This document shows positions 1 to 59,079 of a DNA stretch of 60,193 nucleotides, one piece after another. Source of the DNA: Bugula neritina (Eukaryota > Animalia > Bryozoa); assembly GCA_964035545.1 (NCBI GenBank), contig CAXIUT010000257.1, positions 1 through 60,193 on the forward strand, in the 5' to 3' direction. The notes under the pieces were generated by a model. The model saw only the letters and a program-made list of their open reading frames with translations. It did no database searches and was not told where the DNA came from. Made by a program: the position numbers and the translations under genes. Numbering within the stretch: the stretch's first letter is position 1; each line of letters starts with the position of its first letter.

Positions 1-2153
1 CCTGAGAATGCCTGCGCCAAACGAACGATCAGCGATATGAACTTTTGCCCCTGCCCGGGTGAACCGAAAGTGGAACACAGATCCCTCAGTGCGATTTCCA
101 GAAAATCTGCTTGCTCAGGATCAAGCGCAACGGTGTATGTCCAATTCAGGTTCTCCTCTAGACCCCGATCCCGAATGACCAAAGGGGCAAAACCGGTGGT
201 CGCTCTAAGTACGACCGCTTCGTCGATTTTGTCCAATCCGAATTCTTCACGCAACCGTTCAGACAGTTCGATCTGGGAGGCCGCCCGGTTGCGTAGATCA
301 TAGGCGTCGTTCTCGTTGCCCGCTGATTCAGCCCCGCCTCCTGTCGCGCGAATATCACGCACACTGCGCGTCACCGCGCCGGTTACAAAACGTAGCCCTG
401 CGCTGACGGCCGCGGGAGTTTTTTCTTTGAAGTCAACAAGATCAATTGTGAACACATCGTCTTCGGTAGGATTGCTCAGGAACGTACGCATTGTTTCACG
501 CGCCTGTTTTGCAAACGCCAGGCGGGCTGCGCGTGCGGCATCTGTCTCGTCACTTGTGACAATTGACAGCGGGATATATTTTGTGCGGACGGCGTTAAGT
601 TCGTCGCGGACTTTGTTCAGATCTAAACTGCTTCGAGAGCCATGGTCGGCAAGGTGAATGACAAAACGCGGTCCATCTTCAAACCATCCTTGATCTGTTT
701 CAAAACGTCGGGCTTGTTGCACCACGGCTTCAAGCGCCGCTTCCTCTCGCAAACCTACCTTATCGTTAAGTCCAGCATGGCTCGAGATAACCTCGAGCGG
801 CCCCGAAAGATCGACGCCTCGGTTAATTGACCGCGAAGGCATCAAGGTTTTGGTGTCAATTGGGTCATCCAGCCCAGTGGCAGACGCTTTTTTGAAATCG
901 CTGTAGGCATAAACCGCCATGCGCATATCCGGCAGTCGCAGCGCTTCGTTAAGCCGGTCCTCGCGATATTTATCAATAAAATCAGAGATGCCTTGCCGTA
1001 CCAGCGGCAGATAGGGCCTCATGCTTTCTGTCGTGTCAACAACCAACATAACGTTGATCCGCTGAAACTCGTTCAATCGTTTGGCCAGATCGGCCTGCGA
1101 GACAAGATCGCCAGCTGCATTCGATCCTGAGCGTCCTAAGAAAATTACCTCGTGATAGGCTGGATCCTCAGGGTCGGCGAAAATGTCGCTCAAAGGATCC
1201 ACTGTGCGTACAATGGGGTAAGACAAGAGTTGCCGGTTGCCGTGGACATATTCCTCAAGTTCTTCAGCAGGCAAACCGGGACGGATGTTTGGTGCCGGTG
1301 TTCCGTCGCGCCAATTTGTAATCAAATCTCCGAGTTCTGTGAAAAGATAACCTTTGCCTGCTGCGTCATAGAACAGCCCCAAACGTGTCGGCCAAATTTC
1401 GAGTCGATTGAGCGCGATCCAGCCGAATATTCCGCTCTCTCCGTCGCCAACCAAAACGACAGGGCCGCCGGATTCATCGATATCTATATCGTGAATTTCA
1501 AGAACAGAAAAAAACGTGCGATTAGGCAGCGCTTGCCCACCACGCGCCTCGGTCCGGAACACCACTTCGCCACGGCCCGCGGCTGCATCCGACCCCAAAA
1601 GGACCCCTTTGGCACGCAACCCCGACGGAATTCCATCACACTCTAGGTCTTTTTGGTCAGGCACAAGCGTGCTGAGTTTGGTGCAAAATGTTCCTAATGG
1701 CATCGCCCGCGCAGCCTCGCATATCGGGCGGGATTTTCGTGTAAAGGTATCCAGTTTCTCGCGGCGATGTTCATCCAAAAGCGCCTTCCGCGGGACCCAG
1801 CCGCATGATGACAGATCCTTGGTTGCCACAAAAACCCGTCGCTCACTTGAAGGACCCGTTTCGGCGTAGCAATTCACCTGCGCAAACGCGCCATTTACAG
1901 TTGCGGCCGACGTTCGACTGCCAGCCAACGGGAAAAGTGGTATGCCATCCCCGATCAGCCATTGGACACCGTTTGATTGTCCTTCTAGCGTTTTTGAAAC
2001 CTCTTTACAGTCAAGGGAATCGTCGAGCTGCAAAAGTTCTTTGGATATCCCTAGATCCCTATCTTGCGCTTGACTGTACGCAACATTCGCAAAGGCGCAG
2101 ACCGTGGTTACCGCTAATGCTGACCGCATAATAATGTTTGCAAATACAGGCAT
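1..2153 (-). CDS. 5' part of the secreted vWA-domain protein (complete copy at 54416..56974)
   Basis: Lies in the duplicated segment; the ORF runs off the window edge. Confidence 0.9.
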   Translation of the reverse strand, partial: MPVFANIIMRSALAVTTVCAFANVAYSQAQDRDLGISKELLQLDDSLDCKEVSKTLEGQSNGVQWLIGDGIPLFPLAGSRTSAATVNGAFAQVNCYAETGPSSERRVFVATKDLSSCGWVPRKALLDEHRREKLDTFTRKSRPICEAARAMPLGTFCTKLSTLVPDQKDLECDGIPSGLRAKGVLLGSDAAAGRGEVVFRTEARGGQALPNRTFFSVLEIHDIDIDESGGPVVLVGDGESGIFGWIALNRLEIWPTRLGLFYDAAGKGYLFTELGDLITNWRDGTPAPNIRPGLPAEELEEYVHGNRQLLSYPIVRTVDPLSDIFADPEDPAYHEVIFLGRSGSNAAGDLVSQADLAKRLNEFQRINVMLVVDTTESMRPYLPLVRQGISDFIDKYREDRLNEALRLPDMRMAVYAYSDFKKASATGLDDPIDTKTLMPSRSINRGVDLSGPLEVISSHAGLNDKVGLREEAALEAVVQQARRFETDQGWFEDGPRFVIHLADHGSRSSLDLNKVRDELNAVRTKYIPLSIVTSDETDAARAARLAFAKQARETMRTFLSNPTEDDVFTIDLVDFKEKTPAAVSAGLRFVTGAVTRSVRDIRATGGGAESAGNENDAYDLRNRAASQIELSERLREEFGLDKIDEAVVLRATTGFAPLVIRDRGLEENLNWTYTVALDPEQADFLEIALRDLCSTFGSPGQGQKFISLIVRLAQAFS

Positions 2154-4246
2154 CAGTTTACTCCAGATCCGGAAATAGTGTCTTTTATTATGAGAACCAA
2201 TTGGTCAGACAATGCCGTCGTGTAGCGCGCTGCTACATCGACACTATCGCGCCAAGGCTCTACGATGAAGGGATAAATTGTAACGTTGAGATCGCCGTTG
2301 TCGCAAGTATATGCCCCTCCTTCGCCCAATGCTGCTGGCGAAAATCCTCTGGGCTGCAAACGGCTTGTGTCTAATGGTTTGGTGCTTGGAATATGGCGCA
2401 TGATCGAGAAAACTTTGAACTGCACAGGGACACCTGGTCGCGTGTTAAGCCGGGCTACCGCATCTGTAAACAGTTCACCTTTGCATGGGTCAACCGTCTC
2501 ATCGCTTGTATCTGGCTGGACATAGCTCAGTAATGTAACGGTCAGCGCCGTCAAACCGTCTTCCGTTGCCTTATCTTGCAGCGGAGAAATCGCTTTCTCT
2601 AGCGCTTTCGCATCAAGTGCCATCCGAGAATTGATCAGCTTCGTGCGGAAACGGTTTACCTTTTTAAACGACCCTAGAATACGGTTTCGCAGCGCATCTG
2701 AGCCGAGTTCCAATGCCTTATTGAAAACTCCGCGCCCGGACACGTTTCCCATGGTGAGATTATCCAACGACCATGCCTGGGACCCGCTTGTTTTGGACAG
2801 GCGGAAGTGTGCTGCCTGTACCGCATCCACAGATTTGCGGGCTAAATCGGCGGCATCTAACGGATCGAGCCCTAGGCGTTCTTCAAGTTCTTTCCCATCA
2901 ATCAGAAAAACATGCGCTAAAGCTTCGCGCTTCGCATCGCCAACACCAAGCCCAATTTCCAAAGTCTTCTGAACCGGCAATGTCACCTCCTGGTCAGTGA
3001 AATCACAATTCTCGACAGGTGCCACATTAACAAGGGTTGCCCGAACTTGATTTTGGTTAATCAAAAAGGGTTGTTTGATCGCTGCACCAGTACGTAAACT
3101 ACCATCAGCTTGACGCCTAGGTTCCAATTCCAATTTTGCGGCTACCCCATCGGTATCGGTATAGTGCAAATCGAATCGGCAATTTCCGTAGTTAAGCACT
3201 GCTGGAATTTTGAGAAAAACCTGCTCAGGCATTTCAACCGCCGCGCCTTCCTTGATTACCCAAGTGCCATTGTTGGACACGTCAATTCGCGCTTTTAGTG
3301 CCGTAAGTTTAGCCATCTGCGATCCACTTTCGGTGCAATCTACGCGATCTTCAAAAACGTCGGCTCCAAGCGCCAAAAGAATGCAATCCAGACGATCTAT
3401 CCCAAGATCTTGTGCATCTTCTACGCGTCCGTCGTTGTATTTAATCTTTATGTTTGGTCCACTCCTCTGTGCAGAAACCTGTGCGGATGGGGCTTTTATC
3501 TCCACTTTTAGAATGGCTTTCTTCGTTTCTCTGGTCGGTGTCGGTACTGCAGCCTTTACGAAAGACTTCATGCTCTCACAATTAACGCCACCGCAAAGTA
3601 CAAAAATTGGCATGCCTTCCTTGACGCTGGCCAATTGAAAAAATTTCTTAATGTTCTCTGATATACCGTCGGCTTTGATGCTACGACTATGTCCAACATT
3701 CCCTTTTTTCAGTCCAAGATAACGAGGTTCAGACAGGTTTTGGCTATCAAGTTTCAGAAATAGATTTGTGCCGTCAGTTTCAACTTTTCCATTGAAAAAG
3801 GCCGATATATTGAAGTTTTTGGCAGCCCACTTTTTGGCTTTCGTTTCAGCGTCAGCGGCCGTTTCAAAAGTACGTACAAGCAAGACCGGTAAACGGGTGT
3901 TATTAAGAAAACGAAATTGGTCTGGGTTAGGATCTTTGTTGGCAACAAGCTCTACAACAATCAGTTTACAACCTAATTTCACAGCGTTGCTATCACTGGG
4001 TGAATCTGTCAGCAAATATGGTTCAGTTCTAGAATCCAATATTTCTCTGACGCTCACGGGGTCGTTAGAAACTGTCCACCCAATTCGACTGAAAATCATT
4101 GCGCCAGATATCTCAGTACTCTCTAAGAAACCTGCAGAGGACAGTAAGCTTTGACAATCAAACTCATCCTGTGTTTGAGCGGTTAGCGGCCCCGACAAAG
4201 CAAACAATAATACTGTTCCAAAACTCTGAATCAATTGTTTAAGCAT
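2153..4246 (-). CDS. Secreted/periplasmic protein of unknown function, 697 aa (duplicate at 56974..59067)
   Basis: Signal peptide MLKQLIQSFGTVLLFALSGPLTA; GGAGG RBS; TGATG coupling to the vWA gene. Confidence 0.85.
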   Translation of the reverse strand: MLKQLIQSFGTVLLFALSGPLTAQTQDEFDCQSLLSSAGFLESTEISGAMIFSRIGWTVSNDPVSVREILDSRTEPYLLTDSPSDSNAVKLGCKLIVVELVANKDPNPDQFRFLNNTRLPVLLVRTFETAADAETKAKKWAAKNFNISAFFNGKVETDGTNLFLKLDSQNLSEPRYLGLKKGNVGHSRSIKADGISENIKKFFQLASVKEGMPIFVLCGGVNCESMKSFVKAAVPTPTRETKKAILKVEIKAPSAQVSAQRSGPNIKIKYNDGRVEDAQDLGIDRLDCILLALGADVFEDRVDCTESGSQMAKLTALKARIDVSNNGTWVIKEGAAVEMPEQVFLKIPAVLNYGNCRFDLHYTDTDGVAAKLELEPRRQADGSLRTGAAIKQPFLINQNQVRATLVNVAPVENCDFTDQEVTLPVQKTLEIGLGVGDAKREALAHVFLIDGKELEERLGLDPLDAADLARKSVDAVQAAHFRLSKTSGSQAWSLDNLTMGNVSGRGVFNKALELGSDALRNRILGSFKKVNRFRTKLINSRMALDAKALEKAISPLQDKATEDGLTALTVTLLSYVQPDTSDETVDPCKGELFTDAVARLNTRPGVPVQFKVFSIMRHIPSTKPLDTSRLQPRGFSPAALGEGGAYTCDNGDLNVTIYPFIVEPWRDSVDVAARYTTALSDQLVLIIKDTISGSGVN

Positions 4247-4258
4247 TAAACCGTCCTC

Positions 4259-5095
4259 CTATTCGAAAATGACAATATGCGCCGCATCGGAATTGTTGCG
4301 CGGAGCCAAGCGGATCATTTGGCCTGTACGATCACGAGCACAAAGATTTGGGACGTCATTTTCCCACACCCAGATCACGCGTCTAAGAGCTTTTTGACTT
4401 CCGTCCTGCGCGATCATCCAATCAAGACCCTGTTCACACTGCTTCACGCTTAACCGCGGGATTCCAACACGCAATGAATTGATGTTTTTGGCTGTGGTGA
4501 GAGATAGCCGCGCGTTATCCCCCAAATAGCTGAAACCTGGATCAGGAGAGATCTCGAACGCGGCCAACCGCGCTTCGAGCTGCACAACGCGGGTTTCAGC
4601 CTTGAGGCGCTTATCGAGCTCGACTCTCAATTCATCGGTCCGCGCTGTCAACTGGTTCGCAAGGCGATTGACTTCGGCGCTCATTTCGCTCGTTGCTTCA
4701 TTCTCTTTGGGGTCGTCACTAAAGGATGTGCAAGCTTCCAACCGATCATTCAAATTCAGATTCGAGCGACGGGCCTGCTGCCTGTCTTCTTTGCAAAATG
4801 TGATTTCTTCTTGCAGCAACTGTAACTGTGCGTCGTCAACACCGCAGCTATCTGCGGGTGGCTCCAAAGACGCCATTGACGAAAGCATCAAGACAAGTTG
4901 GGCCTTGTCTGACGTACAGGACGCGAGGGCCAGCTGCGTCGCTGTTTTGGAGTCCGTTGTATTTTCAGCAGTCCCAACGGCTGTGGGTTCGGTCATTTGT
5001 TGGTCGCTTGTCGGTTCTGTTTCTTGCGCAGCAATGAATGTGGTGAAATTCAATCCCAAAATTGTAGCGCAAACAATGCGTCCGAATTGTATCAT
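4259..5095 (-). CDS. Secreted coiled-coil protein (likely start 5095, MIQFGR...; duplicate at 59080..59916)
   Basis: AGGA RBS overlapping the ABC gene's end; signal peptide; heptad-rich segment EVNRLANQLTARTDELRVELDKRLKAETRVVQLEARL. Confidence 0.8.
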   Translation of the reverse strand: MIQFGRIVCATILGLNFTTFIAAQETEPTSDQQMTEPTAVGTAENTTDSKTATQLALASCTSDKAQLVLMLSSMASLEPPADSCGVDDAQLQLLQEEITFCKEDRQQARRSNLNLNDRLEACTSFSDDPKENEATSEMSAEVNRLANQLTARTDELRVELDKRLKAETRVVQLEARLAAFEISPDPGFSYLGDNARLSLTTAKNINSLRVGIPRLSVKQCEQGLDWMIAQDGSQKALRRVIWVWENDVPNLCARDRTGQMIRLAPRNNSDAAHIVIFE

Positions 5096-5099
5096 GGCG

Positions 5100-7463
5100 T
5101 TATTCCTGTAAATATTTCTTAAGCTGGTTGCGGGTTTGTCGCCACCAGATCGCAACGACCAATGCGGTAATAATAGCCGTCGCGGCCCCCAGCTTGACAA
5201 CAGATTGTGTAAAGCCCACTTCGGCATAGTCCCAAATTGACCCCAGATTAGGCGGTAGAGCAGGCATTAGGAAATACAAAGCGAGCGCGCCGTATCCGAC
5301 AAAGAAAACCAAAGCGAAGATAAAGGCGGGTATAAGATGGCAAAAAATGGCCCAAAAGATATCTAAAAAGCCTGCACCGTGGGCAATGAAAAGAGCGAGC
5401 ACGCGTTTGTTGAGTTCCAGAATATTGTTGATGACAAGGAACACGAGCATTGCGCATCCAAATAGGCTCATCCAGACAATGACGGGCGGCACACGGTGCG
5501 CCAATCGCGAGATATTCTGAAGCGTTTTGACCGCCGCTGCACTGTCATCGCGCACACGGTAATGACTGTCCTGAATCACATCACGCGCGTTTTCAAACCC
5601 ATCAATCGGGAAATAGGCGGTTGCGATATTAAACGGCCGCGGTGAGTAACCTGTTTGCAGCCCCGCCGCCCGTTGGAAATCATGTTCGAAAATGATGATC
5701 TCTGCTTGCGACGGATATAGCGGTGGGGGCAAAGCAATGGAGCCTCGGATTTCAAGTTCTATCGGTGCGGTGCGACCGCCCTGCCCCGCAGCCCATTGCA
5801 CAATGATTGGGCTGTCTATCGGATGGCCGCAACGCTCGATAAGCGTATCGACATAGAATTGGTCAAGCATGGCAATTCCAAGCGGGTTATCAAAATTGGT
5901 TTCATCCGCGCGCGCCTCGGAAATGATGACGTCTGGCACATCGGTAAGGCCCGCTTCGCCACTGGATTTGACAAGCTGCGTTTGGCGGACCAATGGATCG
6001 TGCGCGTTCAGTGCAACGGTTTGCAACGGCAGCCAACGATTGCAGCCCGCCTCTGGCGATCTGAAACGTATTGCTGAACCACTGACCGATCGTCTTCCAT
6101 AAACCGAGACGCGTTCTATTTCCTGCGCGGAGGTTCCTTTGGTCTTTAACGCGCTGGCTATTTTGTCGCGTATAGTAGGCACAGTGCTATCGCCATACAG
6201 CTGTTGAGGCGCGTCGTCGGCGTTTTCGTCGGCAGGCACAATGTATTCAAAGACAATGCGCGCCACTGACGGGTCCTGCAATTGGGCGTCACTATAGGAT
6301 TGCGCAAGACGGCCAAAACCTTCGACCGCAGCGATTTGCGCCAACAGAATGCACAGAACAAAACCAAAAGAATATCGGCTGTAACTGAGCAAGCGAAGCA
6401 GCCAAGACCGGACCCTGTTTTCCTTCACCGGCTTGCCAGTCACCAGCCCCAACGTCCGCAAAAGAGATCGGGGGGCAAGGTGTGGATGATTGGTTCGCTC
6501 TCCACGCGGAGACAGCCATTCCTCGTAAGACAAAGCGTTCGCGATCCAACCGGAAAATTGCCACCTGCCAGGTGCAATAACACGGTCTTCGGTCGGTTCC
6601 GCCGCAGCCTGCGTGGTGTTGTTTTTGGCGTGTGTGTTAATATCCTGGCTGATGTCCCGTAAAACGGTGAGCCGCTCTGCCCAGGTTTCGGTCCCGAATG
6701 GATCAAGATCCGACGCCTCGTCTTCTTCGTATTTAATGGCCAGAGCGAAATTTTGCGCTTCGGTCGGTTCTACGACGCGCCCGTCAGCGACGAAAACGAA
6801 ATGATTTGCAAAGCGCGCGGCATGTTCCAGATTATGCGTCACCCAAAGAACGGGCCGCCCAGTTTCATCCGACCATGCCTGCAGCGCTTCCATTGCATAT
6901 GTTGCCGTACGTTCATCTAGGCTGGATGTTGGCTCATCACACAGAATTGCGCGCGGGTTCATCGACAAGGCGCGCATAATCGCGATGCGCTGCGCTTGCC
7001 CGCCACTTAATTGATTGGCCTTCTTTCCGACCAAACTGTCTGACCCATCCTGTAGATCAAGTTTTTCCAAGGCGCGGCGTAACTTGGACAATCCGAGGGG
7101 TGGATTATCTGCATCTGGCACCCGCGAAACTTGACCCTGTAAAACATTCAACAGGCCACTGCCCACACCAAGGAGCATCGGGTTTTGGAAAACGAAAGAC
7201 ACCAGCCCCGGGGCAACACCTGAGTGCGAGATATCGCGGCCCTCGAATGTGAAATGACCACCATCTTTAATCTGTGGTGTCAAAAAGCCAGCAAGAATCG
7301 ACAGCAGCGTCGTCTTGCCCGATCCCGAGTGCCCAATAATGGCCGTCACACCTGTCGGATTAATGTCAAGGTTTTCGACGATAATCCCATGCACCCGCGT
7401 GCTATCGGTCTCTACTTTTTTGTTGTTGTAGAGATAGCAAACGTCTTTCAATGAATATGACAT
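5100..7463 (-). CDS. Fused ABC ATPase + FtsX/MacB-type permease (TagT/TagS- or MacB-like)
   Basis: Walker A GHSGSGKT, signature LSGGQ, Walker B ILCDEP, H-loop VTHN; then one TM, a large periplasmic loop and three C-terminal TMs. Confidence 0.9.
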   Translation of the reverse strand: MSYSLKDVCYLYNNKKVETDSTRVHGIIVENLDINPTGVTAIIGHSGSGKTTLLSILAGFLTPQIKDGGHFTFEGRDISHSGVAPGLVSFVFQNPMLLGVGSGLLNVLQGQVSRVPDADNPPLGLSKLRRALEKLDLQDGSDSLVGKKANQLSGGQAQRIAIMRALSMNPRAILCDEPTSSLDERTATYAMEALQAWSDETGRPVLWVTHNLEHAARFANHFVFVADGRVVEPTEAQNFALAIKYEEDEASDLDPFGTETWAERLTVLRDISQDINTHAKNNTTQAAAEPTEDRVIAPGRWQFSGWIANALSYEEWLSPRGERTNHPHLAPRSLLRTLGLVTGKPVKENRVRSWLLRLLSYSRYSFGFVLCILLAQIAAVEGFGRLAQSYSDAQLQDPSVARIVFEYIVPADENADDAPQQLYGDSTVPTIRDKIASALKTKGTSAQEIERVSVYGRRSVSGSAIRFRSPEAGCNRWLPLQTVALNAHDPLVRQTQLVKSSGEAGLTDVPDVIISEARADETNFDNPLGIAMLDQFYVDTLIERCGHPIDSPIIVQWAAGQGGRTAPIELEIRGSIALPPPLYPSQAEIIIFEHDFQRAAGLQTGYSPRPFNIATAYFPIDGFENARDVIQDSHYRVRDDSAAAVKTLQNISRLAHRVPPVIVWMSLFGCAMLVFLVINNILELNKRVLALFIAHGAGFLDIFWAIFCHLIPAFIFALVFFVGYGALALYFLMPALPPNLGSIWDYAEVGFTQSVVKLGAATAIITALVVAIWWRQTRNQLKKYLQE

Positions 7464-7464
7464 G

Positions 7465-7956
7465 CTACAAGTAACCCCTTCCCGATCTTACCAATATGAC
7501 AGCCAGCGCAACCGCAAGCAGCCCGGATACTATAAAAAGTGCACGCGACGTCGACGTTACCAGCCCGCCATGACCCATGAGCGGTACAATAAATCCGCTG
7601 AACCAAATGACGGCGAATACGATTGCGCGGTCACGCTGCAAGCCTACATTACGAGCAACAAACGCACCGCCTGCGGCCACAATAACCCATGCGATAATCG
7701 CAGACGTGAAATTTACGGAGAACGATATCCAGCCAACCGGAACAGGCCAACCGCTGATTAAATCAATCCCGAACGGCCCGATACTCACAGACACTGCGTA
7801 CCAAAGCAGCACCCATACCCCGATAGCGAGGCCAAGGCCCACGCTGGTTAATAGGGCCGTGCGTGGTCTTTTGCTCAGCAAAACTAAACCTGCGATCGCA
7901 AGTGCTGCCGCAAAAGGCGGGGCGAAGGAAATTGGATCACTCTGTTGGAGTATCAT
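7465..7956 (-). CDS. Small multi-pass membrane protein (about 5 TM)
   Basis: 163 aa, almost entirely hydrophobic; overlaps the upstream gene and abuts the ABC gene. Confidence 0.75.
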   Translation of the reverse strand: MILQQSDPISFAPPFAAALAIAGLVLLSKRPRTALLTSVGLGLAIGVWVLLWYAVSVSIGPFGIDLISGWPVPVGWISFSVNFTSAIIAWVIVAAGGAFVARNVGLQRDRAIVFAVIWFSGFIVPLMGHGGLVTSTSRALFIVSGLLAVALAVILVRSGRGYL

Positions 7957-8920
7957 TGAAGCGACCCTCCAGCAGTGAAAGCTCTGACATCATCGGCGCG
8001 GCGCAACTGACGTTTTTTTGGATTTTGGATAAGTCCGACATCGCCTGCGTGTGCACAGCTTTGTCGCCAACAACCACGGCCAAAAGCCCCAAGGCAAAAT
8101 GCCGCCAAGACGCCATTTCTGGGGAAATTTGGCGCACGACCTGCTCTGCCAAATCCCGATCAAGGGCGAAAGCCAAATGTCCAAGCATCAAAGGGCATGC
8201 GCCCGCCTCGGAGAGATCAAGGATCCGGTCGGAAAAGTCGCCAATGATCTTGGGGCACTGGCTGTTACCCTGCTCCCAAGGTTTGGCGCGCATCCACCCC
8301 AACACACGCCAGCTGAGAACCTGAAAACTTAATGGATCAGCCTTCTGCGCCTCGTCTAAGCGCAGCAACAGGTCACTGGACCATGCCTTTGACGACTGGT
8401 CGTTGGCTGTGACAATGGACCAAAAAAGCCGATCTGAACGCAGGCTATCCGGCACGTCTGATTGAGCCGCAAACTGGTCAATAAAGGCTCTCGCTTCAGC
8501 GTATTTTCCAAACTGGATTGCTGTTAAAATAAGTTGATTTTCAAGTACTTGTCTTTGATTTACAGACAGTTGCCCCGCGTCGAGCCCATCGTTCAGAAGA
8601 CCAATCGCAACCTCATAGTCACGCGCAAAACTGGCGAAAGATACTGCGCGCCGGACGTCTTCTGGCATGGGATTCAGCGTGATCTGCTCGCGCATTGTTG
8701 CAGTATCTCCAAAACGGACCAGAGACTGACTACAGCCCTTTTCGATCTGCGACTCTATCCGGCGTGTATCGACGATAGGCTGCGGCACGACAGTGACAAT
8801 GCGTGCCCATTCCAGATTGGTGCGCACCCATTGGGTTTGCGGTGCCGCAAGCTGGTCTGCCAACGTCACCGATCCAAGTCCCATTACCAGAGCCGTAGAA
8901 GTGATACGCGCAATCTTCAT
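7937..8920 (-). CDS. Secreted all-helical, TPR-like protein
   Basis: Signal peptide; TPR-like helices (DYEVAIGLLNDGL, GKYAEARAFIDQF, LDEAQKADP); ATGA overlap with the upstream gene. Confidence 0.7.
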   Translation of the reverse strand: MKIARITSTALVMGLGSVTLADQLAAPQTQWVRTNLEWARIVTVVPQPIVDTRRIESQIEKGCSQSLVRFGDTATMREQITLNPMPEDVRRAVSFASFARDYEVAIGLLNDGLDAGQLSVNQRQVLENQLILTAIQFGKYAEARAFIDQFAAQSDVPDSLRSDRLFWSIVTANDQSSKAWSSDLLLRLDEAQKADPLSFQVLSWRVLGWMRAKPWEQGNSQCPKIIGDFSDRILDLSEAGACPLMLGHLAFALDRDLAEQVVRQISPEMASWRHFALGLLAVVVGDKAVHTQAMSDLSKIQKNVSCAAPMMSELSLLEGRFNDTPTE

Positions 8921-9549
8921 CGGAAAACACTTTGCGAGGTGAAACTGCGGGGTGACAGGACAAGCACAAGTTTCAAAAGTTCGTCTGCTTTTGGGGCCTT
9001 GACCAAGGCATAGCGAAGCCGAATATCACAGGCCTGGCTTAGGCCCGACAAAGGCGCAAGATCGTCCACATCCGATACCAAAAAGACGGTTAGCTGAGAA
9101 CGCAATCCTTGGGGGCATTCGATGCCCCGCGCTAGATCCAACTTTGCCCGCACCCACGGCTCAGGCGGGGCCACTGGATCGACGTACAGCTGCAGGGATG
9201 ACGCATTTGGCACAGCTTTATAGCGCGAGCTGGTGGAAAAGATGGCATCACCGCTTGGGCCAGCGTAGGCCGCATCGGGTTCCTGAAGTCCTAAGGCAAC
9301 GGCCGACATATTAAGGACAGTCAACGCGCCACCCGTATAGATCGCGAAATCGCCACGCTCCCTGACGGCCTTCCAGCCCGAACTGTTCAGTTCTTGCGTC
9401 ATGTTCTGTTGCGCAATGGATTCAACATTTACGCGCGGTTCTTCGACAACGATGCTGAATTTTATGAATACGAATAAAACAAGGATCGAACAGAAAAAGG
9501 TAATCGCCAAATCGATCGATGCAGTGTCCAGATCGCTTTCATTTTCCAT
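8917..9549 (-). CDS. Single-TM MotB/ExbD/TolR-like protein #2 (likely start 9549)
   Basis: MENESDLDTASIDLAITFFCSILVLFVFIKF: Asp at the start of one TM helix, followed by a periplasmic domain; overlaps the stop of partner #1. Confidence 0.6.
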   Translation of the reverse strand: MENESDLDTASIDLAITFFCSILVLFVFIKFSIVVEEPRVNVESIAQQNMTQELNSSGWKAVRERGDFAIYTGGALTVLNMSAVALGLQEPDAAYAGPSGDAIFSTSSRYKAVPNASSLQLYVDPVAPPEPWVRAKLDLARGIECPQGLRSQLTVFLVSDVDDLAPLSGLSQACDIRLRYALVKAPKADELLKLVLVLSPRSFTSQSVFR

Positions 9550-10000
9550 CCGGCAACTCCATATTTGCCAAGGAAACGACATATACAGACCGCGACCCAG
9601 AATCGGCGCGCGGGATGTCATCAAGATTAGAGTTCCGCGTCGCCACAAGTTCCTTTGAAATAAACGTATAGCAACGCCCTGTAATCACGCCGCGCTCGTC
9701 GGGGACAACCGCCAAAAGGTAGTAGGGTTTTGCGCTCATGTCCATTCGATCGGGAAGGTTCGCCAGATCGCTTGCTTGCGCTACAGGCATGGCATCGGCG
9801 GCAATTCGATCTGCGGGCCAAACCAGCGCGTTTGTAATGACCTCATTGTCAGTTTGTGCGGGGCACGTCGCAAGGAAATCGGCCTGAAGCGGAATTGGCT
9901 GGGGTTCGAAAGGTTGAGACACCGCAAGGACCATCAACAAGGCCGCGGCCGCAGAAATGAATAGGTCCGTCATCGCCAAGCCAGCTGATTGACCGATCAT
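9539..10000 (-). CDS. Single-TM MotB/ExbD/TolR-like protein #1
   Basis: LAMTDLFISAAAALLMVLAV: TM helix with an Asp at the canonical position; ATGA-coupled to the MotA-like gene. Confidence 0.6.
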   Translation of the reverse strand: MIGQSAGLAMTDLFISAAAALLMVLAVSQPFEPQPIPLQADFLATCPAQTDNEVITNALVWPADRIAADAMPVAQASDLANLPDRMDMSAKPYYLLAVVPDERGVITGRCYTFISKELVATRNSNLDDIPRADSGSRSVYVVSLANMELPDGK

Positions 10001-10488
10001 GCCGAGGCGGTCTTGATTGCAAGATGGCTCACTGTTCGAAAGATCATCAACAAAACTGACGACGTCAGCCCAAGAAAGGTTGTGTCGAACGCGGTCGATA
10101 GTCCTCCAATCAAAGCCGCTGGATCACCTTCGCCCATCGCAGTCTCAAGCCCGCCAACAGCCAGCGACACACCAATGATTGTCCCTAGAAAGCCCAAGGA
10201 CGTGAACAGAGTTTGACCCCACAACGTGAACATATCATAGGCTGCGGCACCGGATTGACCCCGACGCATCGCTACAACGGCATGAAGCGGCATCGCCAGC
10301 AAACCACTCAGCAACGCGCCTTGATAAACGCTTTGGAAACTGCGCGACAAAACACCGCCCAGATATCCGCTCTCGGCAAAACGCTGATGATCTAGCCCAT
10401 TGGCAGCAGCGAGCCAAAGAAGACCCGCCACCAGCATGGTCATACCAATCGCATCAAGGAAAACGCGTGCTCGAATTTCCATTTTCAT
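9997..10488 (-). CDS. MotA/TolQ/ExbB proton-channel family protein, minimal (163 aa)
   Basis: Family motifs TSLGFLGTIIGV and GGLSTAFDTTFLGL in the last two TMs. Confidence 0.85.
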   Translation of the reverse strand: MKMEIRARVFLDAIGMTMLVAGLLWLAAANGLDHQRFAESGYLGGVLSRSFQSVYQGALLSGLLAMPLHAVVAMRRGQSGAAAYDMFTLWGQTLFTSLGFLGTIIGVSLAVGGLETAMGEGDPAALIGGLSTAFDTTFLGLTSSVLLMIFRTVSHLAIKTASA

Positions 10489-10505
10489 GCCCCCAGTACA
10501 TTGGT

Positions 10506-11132
10506 TTACTGAGTCACACCATCCAGCAGGCTTTCGGCTAGAACTTTACCGTTTTCGACAATGCTCGAAAATTCATTGACGTTATTGCGGATGGATTGTG
10601 CGGCAAGCTGCACCTGATTTGCCTTGATGAAAAACACGAGCGCGTCATCATTTTCTTCGAGCGTGCGCAGCAAGTTGCGCGCCTCTACCACAGTCGATGA
10701 ACGCTTGCGGTCATCAGACTCCAAGTCATCCAACGTTTTCTCCAACCCCGGAATCGCGGTTTTAATAGCACTGTTGTTAGAGGCTTCTGCTTCGGCAATC
10801 AAGGCAAGCGTTTCCTCCTTATACTTGTCGATCGCCAGATCAAATGTAGATCCATCCTCCATCTGGGTTGTCGCTTCTTTCAGATCAGCAATAAGCCCAG
10901 AAACGCGTTCTTGAGCCTGCTCGATTTCGACCAACCCTTTTTCGAGTTCTTCCAGAAAAGGCGGGAACGCCTCGGTGCGGGATTGCAGTTGTTCCATCAG
11001 TGATTTGATCTGTGCAGCACTGGCCTCAACTTGGTCTTCCGCTGACTGTGCCCATGCACCTTGTGCCGCAAATGGCATGGCCAAAGACGCACAAACGGCA
11101 ACTCGCATGCCAAAATCCAACAGTTTAGTCAT
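10506..11132 (-). CDS. Secreted long coiled-coil protein
   Basis: AAGGAG RBS; signal peptide ending AWA; acidic heptad repeats throughout. Confidence 0.85.
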   Translation of the reverse strand: MTKLLDFGMRVAVCASLAMPFAAQGAWAQSAEDQVEASAAQIKSLMEQLQSRTEAFPPFLEELEKGLVEIEQAQERVSGLIADLKEATTQMEDGSTFDLAIDKYKEETLALIAEAEASNNSAIKTAIPGLEKTLDDLESDDRKRSSTVVEARNLLRTLEENDDALVFFIKANQVQLAAQSIRNNVNEFSSIVENGKVLAESLLDGVTQ

Positions 11133-11208
11133 AGAGAATCTCCTTACAGATTAATAATGTTTATCTAGCCTAAATTGAGACTAAGCTTGACGTTTGGAAA
11201 GCCCAAGC

Positions 11209-12042
11209 TCAGCTTTCGCAGAAGGCAACATAGAGTCGAACAATGCCACGGATCGTTCCAGCCGCGTTTTCCAAGGTCTTTACAGAGGTCGTCAGACTCG
11301 AAATTTCGACTTTCAATCCTTCTAGCTTTTGCTCCGATCCTCGAACCAATTTATCAACCAAATCGTCCGCAGTCCCTTCGGTTTTGTACCCGCGCACGAC
11401 GTTCTCCCAGTCTGTCTGGCATTGCTGCACATCTTGGGCTTGACGCTGAAGAGAGCGCAAGTTTGCCGGATTTTCGGAGGCCAGTTTGAAGCTGGCGCTA
11501 AGATCTTCTCGTGTAAATCCGCACAACGCTTCGCGCTCGCTTACGTCTCCATAATCTCGAGTAAGCAATTCACCATAGGTTGAAAGTTCGGATTTGATGT
11601 CCGTGATAAGCAGTGCGGATCGCCCTTCAAGTTCCACAACCGTGGATGAGCACGCGGGTGCAAGCTTAGCCAACTCACATTCTTCTTGCTCGAAGATATC
11701 ACCAAGCTTGGAACAGTCCACTCCCGACTCCGTTACTGGCTCCGACACGACGACCTCAGCAGGTTGTGTATCGCCTTCGGCTTTTCCACCAAGCAGCGAC
11801 GCACATGTCGCATTGTCTTTCGCATTTGCGCGCCCCTGTTCGTCAAAGAAGTTTGCGACGCAGAATGACACATTGCTCGACAGGAAATCTTCATTTCCGC
11901 AAGAAAATTGGGCGCAAGTTGCAGGACAGGTCGACTGCATCTCCGTGTTAGAGCAAATGTCGATGTTAGCTTGAGCCTGAACCAAAGTTCCAAAAAAAGC
12001 AAAAAAAATAGCGGAAACACTAAATCGCAGCAAAAAATTCAT
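11209..12042 (-). CDS. Secreted protein with Cys-rich N-terminus and coiled coil; first gene of the envelope operon (likely start 12042)
   Basis: GAGGG RBS before MNFLLRFS; signal peptide ending AQA; many Cys; C-terminal heptads. Confidence 0.8.
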   Translation of the reverse strand: MNFLLRFSVSAIFFAFFGTLVQAQANIDICSNTEMQSTCPATCAQFSCGNEDFLSSNVSFCVANFFDEQGRANAKDNATCASLLGGKAEGDTQPAEVVVSEPVTESGVDCSKLGDIFEQEECELAKLAPACSSTVVELEGRSALLITDIKSELSTYGELLTRDYGDVSEREALCGFTREDLSASFKLASENPANLRSLQRQAQDVQQCQTDWENVVRGYKTEGTADDLVDKLVRGSEQKLEGLKVEISSLTTSVKTLENAAGTIRGIVRLYVAFCES

Positions 12043-12240: not shown

Positions 12241-12717
12241 CTATTCTGCTCTGGTTTTCAAATCCCAGGCTGGCCATTTCTGTATATAAAAAGAAGGCGT
12301 CGGTGCACGAATAAAAGTGGTCCCACTAACTCGGACAGCTTTACGGCCTTTGGTTCGGGTGAACAGATACGCACGGCGCCGCTTGCCAGAGACAGATATC
12401 CAATGCGCCACCGCCTTGCGGCTCACGCCGGTCAGCTCTGGATGCACGGGCTTCGCGGTCTTTCTTTGCTTTGCCGAGATCTTACTGCGCACCTGGCCGT
12501 TTGAGCAGCAAACATCGCGCACCTGAAGGTTTAGCAGATCGACCGAGCGCAACATGCTGTCCAGCGCCAGCGACAGGAGCGCATAGTCGTGCCACTGTTC
12601 TTGCTTGATCAGCCAGATCGAGAGCTGGCGAATTTCCGCTGCGGTGAAGTGGACTTTGACCCCTTGCGATCGGTCCTTGTTCCAGCCCGCGCCGTTCAAG
12701 CGGTGTTTTTTTCTCAT
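12241..12717 (-). pseudogene. Truncated tyrosine recombinase (N-terminal half of the catalytic domain)
   Basis: WNKDRSQGVK...DYALLSLALDSMLRSVDLLNL...QRKT; C-terminal HxxR and Tyr motifs are absent. Confidence 0.75.
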
Positions 12718-39337: not shown

Positions 39338-39396
39338 ATCGACACGCCAGATGTGGGACGGAATGCCGTGCAAACATAGTGCTATTTTGGTAAGTA

Positions 39397-53281: not shown

Positions 53282-54346
53282 TTACTGTTTCCGCCGGTTT
53301 TTCTCTCGCAGCTTTGAGCCGCGTTCCAGTTTTACCAATCGTTGTAAATCAGCAAGTTCCGATCGTGTACTTATCAATTCATCGCTCATTTGCTTCAGTC
53401 GATGTTTGGATCCTGACTCTTGTTCATCGGCAGCATCTGGTCGCGGTAGGACAGTATCAGCACTTACGCAGCTAGAAAAAGTCAAAGACAAAAAACCAAA
53501 TCCTACAGCCGCAAAAAGAAGCGGACTAAGCTGCGCAATATAGAGCAACGAGTCAGTCAATTGTGCCTGAGGTGTGCCCAAATCACCAACAATTGCGGCC
53601 ATCACAAGCAGCAGGCCAAAAGGAATGAGGCTACGGTACCGCTGCCGCTTTTGTTCTGGTGAAGTTTTTAAGCAAACGACCCAAAGCGAGAGGCTTAGAC
53701 CGAAGGCGAGTATAAGATTTGCAATCGTACGCCGCATGGTATCGTGTAACCGAACCGCCCGCGTACACTCAATTCTGGCTCTTTGAAAAACGGATTGATG
53801 TTCCGAGTGCAGCTGTTGAACCTCGCGGGGGGCTGCCTCGCCGCCTTCTGATGCTCCAAAACTTCCAAAGCCGCCAAACGTGGGTCGAACATTACTTTCT
53901 GTCGTCGGATGACTGGTCGAATTTGCTGAATTTGTTGGCGTCACGCTCACATAGTGCGAATACGCTTCTGCGATCGGATCGAAATCGCAGGCAAGGCTGT
54001 CGATCCGCTGGATAAGCGCATTCCATGAACGATCAAGGCTCTCGCTCAGTTCTTCACTTGCATCGCTGTTAAAGTCATCTGGTCCAGGAAACGGATTGGG
54101 TTGTTGGTAAATTCGTGCAATTTTTTCAAAGGTCACCCGTGCCAACTGACCCTTACGGCCAAGTGCCTCAAGATAAGAAGCAAAGCCGAAAGACTGCTCC
54201 AAGGCACCAAAAATAGCCGGGCCAATAGTGACATCATTAACGCTATGGGACGTTCGGTGAGCGCCTGGTACGGCGGCCCCAAAATTGTAGGTGACGCCCA
54301 CAATCAAGAAAGCGAGGTAAACTATAGCAAAAATTGTCCTCCGCAT
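53282..54346 (-). CDS. Membrane protein (1+3 TM, C-terminal coiled coil); possible last gene of the envelope operon
   Basis: AAGGA RBS; 69 bp downstream of the vWA gene on the same strand. Confidence 0.75.
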   Translation of the reverse strand: MRRTIFAIVYLAFLIVGVTYNFGAAVPGAHRTSHSVNDVTIGPAIFGALEQSFGFASYLEALGRKGQLARVTFEKIARIYQQPNPFPGPDDFNSDASEELSESLDRSWNALIQRIDSLACDFDPIAEAYSHYVSVTPTNSANSTSHPTTESNVRPTFGGFGSFGASEGGEAAPREVQQLHSEHQSVFQRARIECTRAVRLHDTMRRTIANLILAFGLSLSLWVVCLKTSPEQKRQRYRSLIPFGLLLVMAAIVGDLGTPQAQLTDSLLYIAQLSPLLFAAVGFGFLSLTFSSCVSADTVLPRPDAADEQESGSKHRLKQMSDELISTRSELADLQRLVKLERGSKLREKNRRKQ

Positions 54347-54415: not shown

Positions 54416-56974
54416 CTATCGTTCAAAGAAATCTTCGAACCCACCGGACCCTGCCTGTTCTTCAATCTGCGAGGGTAGAACGAAGAAGAAACCAGGAACG
54501 AACACAGTTTCACTACCGATAACGGGGCGGTATTTGTAGATCCGTGATGTCGCTGTTTCACCGTCCTTGAGATCAAATTCCCGACCCGTCCAGACCAGTT
54601 GGCTGGGCTTTGCATAAAGTTCTGCTCGCATCATGTTTGTAAAGTGATAGCTTGTCCAGCACACGTCGCGGCGCAGCTTGTTCGCCACCTCGGAATCAGC
54701 GCTTTCAACACGTGCTCTCAGCAGGCGCGGCTCTTGCGACAGGAAACTCTGATCGGCACCCGGCAAACTGCCCACGTCAGACAGCACCGCATAAAGATCG
54801 CTTAGATCCTGAACATCGTCACCTGAGAATGCCTGCGCCAAACGAACGATCAGCGATATGAACTTTTGCCCCTGCCCGGGTGAACCGAAAGTGGAACACA
54901 GATCCCTCAGTGCGATTTCCAGAAAATCTGCTTGCTCAGGATCAAGCGCAACGGTGTATGTCCAATTCAGGTTCTCCTCTAGACCCCGATCCCGAATGAC
55001 CAAAGGGGCAAAACCGGTGGTCGCTCTAAGTACGACCGCTTCGTCGATTTTGTCCAATCCGAATTCTTCACGCAACCGTTCAGACAGTTCGATCTGGGAG
55101 GCCGCCCGGTTGCGTAGATCATAGGCGTCGTTCTCGTTGCCCGCTGATTCAGCCCCGCCTCCTGTCGCGCGAATATCACGCACACTGCGCGTCACCGCGC
55201 CGGTTACAAAACGTAGCCCTGCGCTGACGGCCGCGGGAGTTTTTTCTTTGAAGTCAACAAGATCAATTGTGAACACATCGTCTTCGGTAGGATTGCTCAG
55301 GAACGTACGCATTGTTTCACGCGCCTGTTTTGCAAACGCCAGGCGGGCTGCGCGTGCGGCATCTGTCTCGTCACTTGTGACAATTGACAGCGGGATATAT
55401 TTTGTGCGGACGGCGTTAAGTTCGTCGCGGACTTTGTTCAGATCTAAACTGCTTCGAGAGCCATGGTCGGCAAGGTGAATGACAAAACGCGGTCCATCTT
55501 CAAACCATCCTTGATCTGTTTCAAAACGTCGGGCTTGTTGCACCACGGCTTCAAGCGCCGCTTCCTCTCGCAAACCTACCTTATCGTTAAGTCCAGCATG
55601 GCTCGAGATAACCTCGAGCGGCCCCGAAAGATCGACGCCTCGGTTAATTGACCGCGAAGGCATCAAGGTTTTGGTGTCAATTGGGTCATCCAGCCCAGTG
55701 GCAGACGCTTTTTTGAAATCGCTGTAGGCATAAACCGCCATGCGCATATCCGGCAGTCGCAGCGCTTCGTTAAGCCGGTCCTCGCGATATTTATCAATAA
55801 AATCAGAGATGCCTTGCCGTACCAGCGGCAGATAGGGCCTCATGCTTTCTGTCGTGTCAACAACCAACATAACGTTGATCCGCTGAAACTCGTTCAATCG
55901 TTTGGCCAGATCGGCCTGCGAGACAAGATCGCCAGCTGCATTCGATCCTGAGCGTCCTAAGAAAATTACCTCGTGATAGGCTGGATCCTCAGGGTCGGCG
56001 AAAATGTCGCTCAAAGGATCCACTGTGCGTACAATGGGGTAAGACAAGAGTTGCCGGTTGCCGTGGACATATTCCTCAAGTTCTTCAGCAGGCAAACCGG
56101 GACGGATGTTTGGTGCCGGTGTTCCGTCGCGCCAATTTGTAATCAAATCTCCGAGTTCTGTGAAAAGATAACCTTTGCCTGCTGCGTCATAGAACAGCCC
56201 CAAACGTGTCGGCCAAATTTCGAGTCGATTGAGCGCGATCCAGCCGAATATTCCGCTCTCTCCGTCGCCAACCAAAACGACAGGGCCGCCGGATTCATCG
56301 ATATCTATATCGTGAATTTCAAGAACAGAAAAAAACGTGCGATTAGGCAGCGCTTGCCCACCACGCGCCTCGGTCCGGAACACCACTTCGCCACGGCCCG
56401 CGGCTGCATCCGACCCCAAAAGGACCCCTTTGGCACGCAACCCCGACGGAATTCCATCACACTCTAGGTCTTTTTGGTCAGGCACAAGCGTGCTGAGTTT
56501 GGTGCAAAATGTTCCTAATGGCATCGCCCGCGCAGCCTCGCATATCGGGCGGGATTTTCGTGTAAAGGTATCCAGTTTCTCGCGGCGATGTTCATCCAAA
56601 AGCGCCTTCCGCGGGACCCAGCCGCATGATGACAGATCCTTGGTTGCCACAAAAACCCGTCGCTCACTTGAAGGACCCGTTTCGGCGTAGCAATTCACCT
56701 GCGCAAACGCGCCATTTACAGTTGCGGCCGACGTTCGACTGCCAGCCAACGGGAAAAGTGGTATGCCATCCCCGATCAGCCATTGGACACCGTTTGATTG
56801 TCCTTCTAGCGTTTTTGAAACCTCTTTACAGTCAAGGGAATCGTCGAGCTGCAAAAGTTCTTTGGATATCCCTAGATCCCTATCTTGCGCTTGACTGTAC
56901 GCAACATTCGCAAAGGCGCAGACCGTGGTTACCGCTAATGCTGACCGCATAATAATGTTTGCAAATACAGGCAT
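54416..56974 (-). CDS. Secreted vWA (MIDAS) domain protein, 852 aa
   Basis: Signal peptide; NVMLVVDTTESMRPY (DxTxS), AVYAYSD, EEAALEAV, FVIHLADHGS. Confidence 0.85.
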   Translation of the reverse strand: MPVFANIIMRSALAVTTVCAFANVAYSQAQDRDLGISKELLQLDDSLDCKEVSKTLEGQSNGVQWLIGDGIPLFPLAGSRTSAATVNGAFAQVNCYAETGPSSERRVFVATKDLSSCGWVPRKALLDEHRREKLDTFTRKSRPICEAARAMPLGTFCTKLSTLVPDQKDLECDGIPSGLRAKGVLLGSDAAAGRGEVVFRTEARGGQALPNRTFFSVLEIHDIDIDESGGPVVLVGDGESGIFGWIALNRLEIWPTRLGLFYDAAGKGYLFTELGDLITNWRDGTPAPNIRPGLPAEELEEYVHGNRQLLSYPIVRTVDPLSDIFADPEDPAYHEVIFLGRSGSNAAGDLVSQADLAKRLNEFQRINVMLVVDTTESMRPYLPLVRQGISDFIDKYREDRLNEALRLPDMRMAVYAYSDFKKASATGLDDPIDTKTLMPSRSINRGVDLSGPLEVISSHAGLNDKVGLREEAALEAVVQQARRFETDQGWFEDGPRFVIHLADHGSRSSLDLNKVRDELNAVRTKYIPLSIVTSDETDAARAARLAFAKQARETMRTFLSNPTEDDVFTIDLVDFKEKTPAAVSAGLRFVTGAVTRSVRDIRATGGGAESAGNENDAYDLRNRAASQIELSERLREEFGLDKIDEAVVLRATTGFAPLVIRDRGLEENLNWTYTVALDPEQADFLEIALRDLCSTFGSPGQGQKFISLIVRLAQAFSGDDVQDLSDLYAVLSDVGSLPGADQSFLSQEPRLLRARVESADSEVANKLRRDVCWTSYHFTNMMRAELYAKPSQLVWTGREFDLKDGETATSRIYKYRPVIGSETVFVPGFFFVLPSQIEEQAGSGGFEDFFER

Positions 56975-59067: not shown

Positions 59068-59079
59068 TAAACCGTCCTC

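Follow-up and report, generated by a model that had tools for sequence, protein, structure and literature searches.

The DNA analysed here, which we call the window, is the whole of contig CAXIUT010000257.1 from the Bugula neritina assembly GCA_964035545.1 (60,193 nucleotides (nt), forward strand). Its two ends are identical, positions 1-5372 matching 54822-60193 with 0 mismatches, and we therefore conclude that a circle of 54,821 bp was read with an overlap. This circle carries a cassette of eleven genes, g1 to g11, which we interpret, from sequence, structural models and context, as a probable stator-energised envelope machine with an unprecedented gene combination.

Twelve open reading frames (ORFs), all on the minus strand, run from 12042 across the junction of the circle to 53282. 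The initial annotation had described a co-directional run of mostly overlapping or nearly abutting genes, extending from 12042 to 54416 or possibly to 53282; the ORF map and the spacings agree with this arrangement, and the ORFs do reach 53282, but the conserved unit stops at g11. Within this unit, the genes overlap or abut with successive spacings of +76, +17, -4, -11, -4, -20, +1, +4, +12, and -1 nt, which suggests an operon with translational coupling. These values were computed with g9 starting at Met45 (coordinate 5095), a start that leaves a signal peptide and a 4-nt gap to g8; from Met1 of the ORF, g9 would overlap g8 by 128 nt. Because of the end overlap, g9, g10, and g11 occur twice in window coordinates.

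The gene g3 (9997..10488, 163 residues) encodes a minimal channel subunit with about four membrane segments, which by its sequence belongs to the MotA/TolQ/ExbB family, as had been proposed initially. It matches PF01618 (MotA_ExbB) with 27.6 bits, above the cut-off of 22.9, over its last two membrane helices, and the same domain is precomputed for nearly all of the 93 clusters of the g3 family. In profile alignments with Escherichia coli proteins (hhalign), the E values are 0.002 for ExbB, 0.004 for TolQ, and 0.096 for MotA. More specifically, T103 and T137 of g3 align with T145 and T178 of TolQ and with T148 and T181 of ExbB. Both Thr residues and the core motif are invariant in the family, whose mean pairwise identity is 47%. 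We also observe that g3 has hardly any cytoplasmic domain and is about 70 residues shorter than ExbB and TolQ. Its best matches in PADLOC and NCBIfam are ZorA2 models, of which it covers the membrane core only (positions ~10-130 of 420-680), and a profile search of the PDB gave weak MotA matches and nothing further. A recent survey of MotA relatives (PMC12505986) places non-flagellar proteins of this kind among generic ion transporters whose cytoplasmic domain is condensed.

Directly downstream, g4 (9539..10000, 153 residues) overlaps g3 by 4 nt, and g5 (8917..9549, 210 residues) overlaps g4 by 11 nt, the start of g5 being taken at the ATG at 9549 in an ORF that extends to 9648. Both products are predicted single-pass proteins, with periplasmic domains of about 100 residues in g4 and about 170 in g5, each carrying two invariant Cys. 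In the alignments, one Asp near the cytoplasmic end of the sole membrane helix is invariant in each family (D12 in g4 and D13 in g5), which bears out the earlier description of two partners with an Asp in the membrane segment. The C-terminus of g5 consists of an invariant hydrophobic-Phe-Arg motif. None of the 33 g4 and g5 sequences matches the ExbD/TolR (PF02472) or MotB/OmpA-like Pfam models, even at E values up to 10, and hhalign against TolR and ExbD of E. coli gave E values of only 0.07-0.5. Profile-profile comparisons detected no relation between g4 and g5, nor between g5 and g9. Judged by these features, g4 and g5 show the functional hallmark of B subunits, not membership in their family.

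The candidate for a second engine is g8 (5100..7463, 787 residues), in which an ATP-binding cassette (ABC) ATPase (ABC_tran, E 1.5e-25) is fused to a permease, probably of FtsX type, which bears out the earlier call of an ATPase-permease fusion. The Walker A, Q-loop, signature, Walker B, and H-loop motifs are all invariant. The order of domains is MacB-like, with the ATPase followed by a first transmembrane segment (TM1), a periplasmic domain of about 280 residues with two invariant Cys, and three to four further hydrophobic segments (four by hydropathy). FtsX (PF02687) is matched over its full length in 10 of the 13 g8 family members, with a best E value of 1.8e-5; the window copy itself scores 18.8-19.1 bits, below the cut-off of 25.5. 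In the PDB, g8 finds matches only through its ATPase domain, and the periplasmic domain shows no match to those of MacB, LolC, or FtsX in a profile search. The sequence of g8 thus points to a MacB/LolC/FtsX design with an insert that matches nothing. The neighbouring g7 (7465..7956, 163 residues) appears to be a small polytopic membrane protein with four to five hydrophobic segments by hydropathy. Its position holds an ORF of 145-170 residues in all loci compared, although conservation is poor (mean pairwise identity 26%).

Four further genes encode candidate components of a secreted scaffold. g1 (11209..12042, 277 residues, with the start taken at the ATG at 12042 in an ORF extending to a TTG at 12096) has a visible signal peptide, a C-terminal coiled coil, and 12 Cys, of which 6 are conserved; it belongs to no Pfam or NCBIfam family and comes first in every complete locus as well as in two remote variants of the cassette. 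g2 (10506..11132, 208 residues) is a secreted coiled-coil protein whose mature part lacks Cys; it keeps the second position, including in the remote variants (E 1e-10 to 1e-13). g6 (7937..8920, 327 residues), which is secreted and has four invariant Cys, is also kept in the remote variants (E 1e-11 to 1e-18) and finds no match in the PDB or Pfam. It had been labelled TPR-like, but TPR_19 and TPR_14 each match just one of 16 family members, with E values of 0.07-0.3, and we do not retain this label.

The last of these, g9 (4259..5095, 278 residues from Met45), is secreted and combines a coiled coil with a C-terminal domain of about 110 residues that is conserved (window 4259-4600). In this domain, C264, W270, W286, and C296 are invariant and H317, five residues from the C-terminus, is nearly so (numbering from Met1 of the ORF, at 5227). 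A papain- or NlpC/P60-like hydrolase built on C264 and H317 was considered and rejected for want of any supporting match; more simply, the two Cys may form a disulfide, as in the other exported parts. A PDB profile search with g9 returned spurious coiled-coil matches only, and g1, g2, and g9 all show weak matches of coiled-coil type only. Even the weak matches, taken across all family members of g9, g6, g4, and g5, contain no ExbD, OmpA, peptidase, or membrane-fusion signal.

The two largest proteins are encoded at the end of the unit. g11 (54416..56974, 852 residues, its 3' part also present as window 1-2153) is a secreted protein with a beta-rich N-domain, a von Willebrand factor A (vWA) domain, a helical C-domain, and eight invariant Cys. 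The vWA assignment, made in the initial annotation, is weak by sequence (VWA_2) and becomes clear by fold. An AlphaFold2 model built from an alignment of 55 sequences (predicted local distance difference test score, pLDDT, 83; predicted template-modelling score, pTM, 0.82) matches integrin I-domains, TEM8/CMG2, and vWF A3 in Foldseek, with probability 1.00 and target-normalised template-modelling (TM) scores of 0.6-0.7, and also pilus adhesins. The viral fold library BFVD gives the same picture of generic vWA matches, and a PDB profile search gave no informative match. The metal ion-dependent adhesion site (MIDAS), D373-x-T375-x-S377 ... D503, is invariant in the 55 sequences, whose mean pairwise identity is 46%. 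The modelled g11 is thus a vWA fold with an intact predicted MIDAS. The N- and C-domains have no separate fold match, since the vWA domain dominates a whole-chain search.

g10 (2153..4246, 697 residues, the same bases recurring at 56974-59067) was previously described as a secreted protein, which holds; it is a multidomain protein, whose probable vWA-like fold in the C-terminal part had been missed. For its AlphaFold2 model (42 sequences, pLDDT 87, pTM 0.56), the best matches are vWA modules of pilus-tip adhesins and of a gliding adhesin, namely those of PilB (a pilin of Streptococcus sanguinis), RrgA, SpaC, and TRAP of Plasmodium, and that of BatB, with E values down to 3e-6, but with target-normalised TM scores of just 0.3-0.5, a looser superposition than for g11. 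The only invariant residues of g10 are Cys, with no invariant Asp, Ser, or Thr, and it is the fastest-evolving member of the cassette (mean pairwise identity 25%), as expected for an exposed or ligand-facing part. Profile-profile comparison found no relation between g10 and g11, and a single-sequence search with g10 returned one relative, which reflects the limit of the word index. The model therefore portrays g10 as a probable MIDAS-less, fast-evolving vWA-like partner of g11.

Every product shows a signal peptide or membrane segments, in line with the initial view that each is membrane-bound or secreted; everything except the ATPase domain of g8 is predicted to be exported or inserted in the membrane. 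The conserved Cys residues follow the same partition: six in g1, two in g4, two in g5, four in g6, two in the periplasmic insert of g8, three in g9, nine in g10, and eight in g11, with none in g2, g3, and g7 and a single one (C175) in the cytoplasmic ATPase domain of g8. Such clustering in the exported parts is a signature of disulfide-bonded periplasmic or extracellular proteins.

Genes g1 to g11 are co-linear and equally packed in every complete related locus, whether on chromosomes, in metagenome-assembled genomes (MAGs), or on metagenome contigs, and their co-conservation is far beyond chance, in agreement with the initial reading of the genes as one machine. The loci compared are those on the chromosomes of Marinibacterium sp. 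SX1 and M. profundimaris, and those of Blastochloris sulfoviridis, Tropicibacter alexandrii, Thalassococcus, MAGs of Limibaculum, Maritimibacter, and Competibacterales, other MAGs, and metagenome contigs. Most carriers are Rhodobacteraceae, to which Blastochloris and the gammaproteobacterial Competibacterales MAG are added. The cassette, maintained in roughly a hundred scattered bacterial lineages, is rare, with 15 loci among 185,579 species represented by one genome each and three loci in a metagenome scan. Homologues of g11 form 57 clusters with 37-75% identity, and an exhaustive profile search with g10 among 1.84 billion proteins gave 62 representatives, none outside the family. As the large searches rely on shared words or a few conserved peptides, distant relatives are under-sampled in these counts.

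The 93 clusters of g3 form a discrete family followed by a sharp drop in score, and the next-best MotA-like proteins beyond this drop belong to the two remote versions of the same cassette. One variant keeps the gene order, and in the other the genes fall into two operons that diverge, [g1 g2 x g3 g4 g5 g6 g7] and [g9? g10? g11 g8]. Profile matches in these variants confirm g1, g2, g3, g4, g6, g8, and g11. That the gene set outlasts rearrangement indicates a functional unit. We conclude that g1 to g11 constitute one autonomous, horizontally mobile operon, in which the proton-path residues, the ATPase motifs, and the metal site are under purifying selection. Beside the rearranged variant (L028:501-3199, on the same contig as L025), we observe a 505-residue fusion of an ABC ATPase with an MlaE permease, together with a 394-residue orphan; the fusion may be an added or alternative second engine. 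In a close relative (L023:4509-6868), the ABC gene is called as three pieces of 116, 507, and 185 residues, for which a sequencing error is as likely as a real disruption, since the long-read assembly has 3x coverage.

The flanks differ in each genome and include genes of nitrogen and thiamine metabolism and transposases, with DsbA-like genes in two of them. Among 13 flanks, one contains a clear defence system, the type III CRISPR-Cas of Blastochloris, and one further match of defence type, to RT-Protease_XI, was not traced to a locus; the idea of a defence island was dropped on this count. A phage origin was also dropped, as viral contigs gave no match to the cassette and the BFVD fold matches are of generic vWA type. 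Downstream of g11 in the window, g12 (53282..54346, 354 residues) encodes a membrane protein shared only with the two closest relatives, as a full-length homologue in L023 (32% identity) and a fragment in L022, the other loci lacking it; we regard it as a lineage-specific add-on outside the conserved unit. The three genes downstream of g12 never recur among the compared loci.

The rest of the circle is the backbone of a mobilisable plasmid of marine type, with a relaxase, a coupling protein, a Toprim protein, a methylase, a resolvase, and IS66 and IS5 elements. The relaxase and coupling protein genes lie at window 21363-23851 and 32498-34462, accompanied by a second HerA/TrwB-like ATPase, and no mating-pore genes were recognised on the plasmid. 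The coupling protein is less than 30% identical to any in PLSDB, which places the backbone far from described plasmids. A protein of 1,987 residues (window 25396-31359, minus strand) combines DUF4011, superfamily-1 helicase domains, an MTES_1575 nuclease, and DUF3320 in a defence-like helicase-nuclease, and an N6 methylase is encoded at 17390-18190. The IS66-family element (38556-41063) carries perfect inverted repeats of 31 nt, and PLSDB contains no close copy of it; the IS5-family element (43148-44198, 27-nt inverted repeats) shares 81-85% identity with copies on plasmids of Phaeobacter and Sulfitobacter, pointing to a host of the roseobacter group. The description of the cassette as plasmid-borne is correct for the window; elsewhere it is chromosomal, and PLSDB holds no similar plasmid or cassette by DNA or protein.

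Directly upstream of g1, a 158-residue ORF (12241-12717, minus strand) matches part of a phage-integrase domain only and may have been left behind when the cassette entered the plasmid. No flanking repeats surround the cassette, and the idea of a transposon was abandoned on this basis. Scans for promoters and terminators gave no more sites than shuffled sequence. Also on the circle is a secreted, Cys-rich orphan protein of 1,339 residues (47509-52571, minus strand), with a 132-nt tandem duplication at 52043-52306, whose gene overlaps by 4 nt that of a 348-residue protein with a peptidoglycan-binding domain; neither shows conservation with the cassette or any other family match.

When all products were scanned with Pfam, NCBIfam, and PADLOC, only MotA_ExbB, ABC_tran, a weak FtsX, and a weak VWA_2 were recognised. 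Searches by sequence in the PDB, by fold in the PDB and BFVD, and in family libraries gave no assignment to Ton, Tol, flagellar, type VI secretion (T6SS), Zorya, or other systems, and the library scans found no cytoplasmic effector, TonB, TolA/B, Pal, outer-membrane barrel, or Zorya effector. These results agree with the initial annotation, which had listed TonB, TolA/B, TonB-dependent receptor, flagellar, T6SS, and Zorya effector genes as absent. In the literature searched, the gene combination was not found, and among the resources searched no curated family, defence catalogue, or solved structure names the cassette. Family membership holds for g3, for the g8 ATPase, and for the vWA domain and MIDAS of g11, is suggested for the FtsX-type domain of g8 and the vWA fold of g10, and fails for ExbD/TolR, Ton, Tol-Pal, Zorya, Agl-Glt, and tetratricopeptide repeats. 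Eight of the eleven proteins stand outside any recognised family, and their combination is without precedent. The co-conserved genes, the invariant energy-coupling residues, and the lack of any name in libraries, structures, or literature together support the earlier suggestion of an envelope apparatus driven by proton-motive force (PMF) and ATP that matches no named system.

We hypothesize that g3 forms a minimal TolQ/ExbB-type channel around an axle of two different Asp proteins, g4 and g5, and infer from the sequences a proton-driven 5:2 complex with a heterodimeric axle. As g3 has practically no cytoplasmic domain, such a motor must deliver its work into the periplasm. The route out would be the periplasmic domains of g4 and g5, locked by disulfides, as in the Ton, Tol, Agl, and GldLM motors and unlike in flagellar and Zorya motors. 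Similarity to Ton (ExbB-ExbD-TonB) and Tol-Pal (TolQ-TolR-TolA) extends to PF01618 membership, both channel threonines, the membrane Asp of the partners near the cytoplasmic helix end, and the export of work to the periplasm, but g3 is shorter, g4 and g5 are not recognisable TolR/ExbD homologues, and no TonB, TolA, TolB, Pal, or receptor is present. g8, of the MacB/FtsEX/LolCDE class and probably acting with g7, would add ATP-driven mechanotransmission into its own 280-residue periplasmic domain. Both engines would act on a periplasmic scaffold of the secreted coiled-coil and helical proteins g1, g2, g6, and g9, which would hold the two large disulfide-rich vWA-fold proteins, g11 with a MIDAS metal site and g10 without. 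This pair would be the working end, binding a ligand through the MIDAS site of g11.

The output is the weakest step of this mechanism. The likeliest candidate is an adhesin-like module that binds its ligand in a metal-dependent manner and would be deployed or put under tension at the expense of energy, for attachment or surface translocation, much as bacterial focal adhesions work. We tentatively favour a PMF- and ATP-powered periplasmic machine that deploys a vWA ligand-binding module for attachment or surface translocation, at a confidence somewhat short of even. Inner-membrane transport or nucleic-acid-directed defence is less likely as an output. The preference for adhesion or surface translocation comes from a design analogue, the Agl-Glt/CglB system, and from the SiiAB precedent. 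In Myxococcus, the vWA adhesin CglB, which is rich in Cys, is driven by AglRQS, a motor made of one TolQ-like subunit and two TolR-like ones (PMC9946355). Agl-Glt/CglB of Myxococcus xanthus is thus the nearest design analogue, sharing one TolQ-like channel with two different Asp proteins, a periplasmic helical or coiled-coil scaffold, and PMF work sent outward to a Cys-rich vWA/MIDAS protein. The resemblance is one of design only: compared with Agl-Glt, the cassette contains no detectable Glt, Cgl, or Agl homologue and lacks the outer-membrane barrels, lipoprotein anchor, and cytoplasmic platform, whereas it includes a probable ABC ATPase-FtsX fusion and two vWA or vWA-like proteins of 700-850 residues. 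The Bat (aerotolerance) operons are similar in that two vWA proteins stand beside helical-repeat proteins, and g10 matches BatB by fold. In Bat operons, the vWA proteins are anchored in the membrane and act together with a MoxR ATPase; the cassette lacks both MoxR and DUF58, and its energy modules are different.

Several observations argue against this favoured mechanism. g4 and g5 are without detectable homology to TolR, ExbD, or MotB, and no homologue of Glt, Gld, or Cgl proteins could be detected. The cassette encodes no outer-membrane barrel, lipoprotein anchor (lipobox), or secretin, so that surface exposure of g10 and g11 is a supposition. vWA folds also serve non-adhesive roles, and the same fold searches match TFIIH subunits and BatB. 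Finally, the domains flanking the vWA folds in g10 and g11, as well as g1, g2, g6, g7, and g9, gave no informative match.

Among the other explanations, envelope maintenance or trafficking survives best, although we consider it unlikely. Here, a TolQR-like motor and a Lol/FtsEX/MacB-like ABC extractor would reshape the envelope or carry a lipid, a lipoprotein, or a component of the wall across the periplasm, with the coiled-coil and vWA proteins as bridge or regulator. Both types of engine are best known from envelope homeostasis, Tol-Pal, LolCDE, and FtsEX-EnvC being textbook cases, and g8 is probably of FtsX type. The comparison with type VII ABC systems (MacAB-TolC, LolCDE, FtsEX-EnvC) is close in the N-terminal ATPase, in what is probably an FtsX-type membrane domain, and in the large periplasmic domain that separates TM1 from TM2. 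Like the partners of FtsEX, g9, a secreted coiled-coil protein with a C-terminal domain bearing Cys and His, is encoded directly after the ABC gene, as EnvC-like partners are. The ABC-MlaE fusion beside the rearranged variant and the DsbA-like genes in two flanks are also consistent with maintenance. The cassette departs from the type VII systems in that the periplasmic domain of g8 does not match those of MacB, LolC, or FtsX, no membrane-fusion protein is present, g9 contains no recognisable hydrolase domain, and a proton motor is coupled to the ABC protein. Against maintenance, no hydrolase, MCE, LolA/B, or Pal-like domain was detected in the cassette, and the MlaE gene accompanies one variant only. 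Moreover, the cassette is rare, sporadic, and mobile (15 loci in the 185,579 species genomes, and a plasmid here), which suggests an accessory rather than a housekeeping function.

Less probable still is defence against phage or conjugation, in which a Zorya-like motor would sense or resist a breach of the envelope, with the variable g10 as sensor of the invader. The sporadic, horizontally transferred distribution, the fast evolution of g10, the type III CRISPR-Cas adjoining the Blastochloris cassette, and the DUF4011 helicase-nuclease and methylase on the plasmid would fit such a role. As in Zorya (ZorAB with effectors), a MotA-family channel is carried on mobile DNA, and ZorA2 models are the best library matches of g3. 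However, g3, with its 163 residues against 420-680 in the ZorA models, lacks the long ZorA tail, and neither a ZorB-type wall-binding domain nor ZorC/D/E is present. The cassette has no cytoplasmic effector, and its only cytoplasmic part is an ATPase domain, so that nothing is cytoplasmic enough to act on invading DNA. The single clear defence system in 13 flanks and the absence of viral-contig matches weigh in the same direction.

Export or assembly, which we hold to be improbable, would have the ABC protein, a g9 adaptor, and the motor as helper move g10, g11, or other cargo out of the periplasm, in the manner of SiiABCDF for SiiE or of MacAB-TolC for small periplasmic cargo. The SPI-4 system SiiABCDF of Salmonella is a type I secretion system (T1SS) for the giant adhesin SiiE, in which SiiAB, a MotAB-like proton channel pair, works with the ABC transporter for the adhesin (bioRxiv 10.1101/641415). 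It is a known precedent for dual energisation by PMF and ATP, combining a proton channel with an ABC protein as the cassette would. The ABC protein of that system, SiiF, exports by the T1SS route together with a membrane-fusion protein and an outer-membrane duct, and what it carries is a giant protein of Ig repeats with its signal at the C-terminus. The cassette, by comparison, has no T1SS exporter, membrane-fusion protein, duct, or Ig-repeat cargo with a C-terminal signal. The order of ATPase and FtsX domains is that of MacB-type exporters, which by textbook knowledge take periplasmic cargo, and g10 and g11 directly follow the ABC gene segment of the operon. On the other hand, g9 contains no membrane-fusion-protein domains and no outer-membrane duct is encoded, folded disulfide-rich proteins of 700-850 residues could not, again by textbook knowledge, pass a TolC-type duct, and g10 and g11 carry ordinary Sec signal peptides instead of C-terminal T1SS signals.

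The Vibrio TonB2-type cluster TtpB/TtpC/ExbB/ExbD/TonB/TtpD has a similar order of coiled coil, channel, two Asp proteins, and helical protein. Ton-like uptake, in which the motor would energise capture and import of a MIDAS-bound ligand, nevertheless seems very improbable despite this order and the closeness of g3 to ExbB and TolQ, given that the cassette and the flanks of 13 loci contain no TonB C-terminal domain or TonB-dependent receptor and that the ABC protein is probably of FtsX type, not an importer with a binding protein.

To our knowledge, ion-driven 5:2 motors power just a handful of systems, namely flagella, Ton uptake, Tol-Pal, gliding and the type IX secretion system, and Zorya. 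We consider the chances evenly balanced that the cassette is the first example of an additional class of envelope machines driven by a stator, alongside the flagellar, Ton, Tol, Agl/Gld, and Zorya classes. This would comprise a minimal TolQ/ExbB-like wheel, a heterodimeric axle of unrelated Asp proteins, an FtsX-type ABC protein as second engine, both engines acting on a coiled-coil scaffold that operates the vWA pair, and new families for eight of the eleven proteins. If true, the coupling of a stator motor to an FtsX-type ATP mechanotransducer and to integrin-like vWA proteins would be a new use of the motor, and would show how, in nature, a single periplasmic machine can draw on two sources of energy, possibly with a heteromeric axle. 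The cassette is compact, mobile, and present in cultured strains of the roseobacter group, for example Marinibacterium profundimaris 22II1-22F33 and Tropicibacter alexandrii LMIT003, which makes it directly testable; Blastochloris sulfoviridis DSM 729 is a further cultured carrier. Were its output defence or envelope repair, the mode would be a new one, in which no cytoplasmic effector takes part. Should the cassette serve adhesion or surface movement, it bears on the surface-attached lifestyle of marine Rhodobacteraceae.

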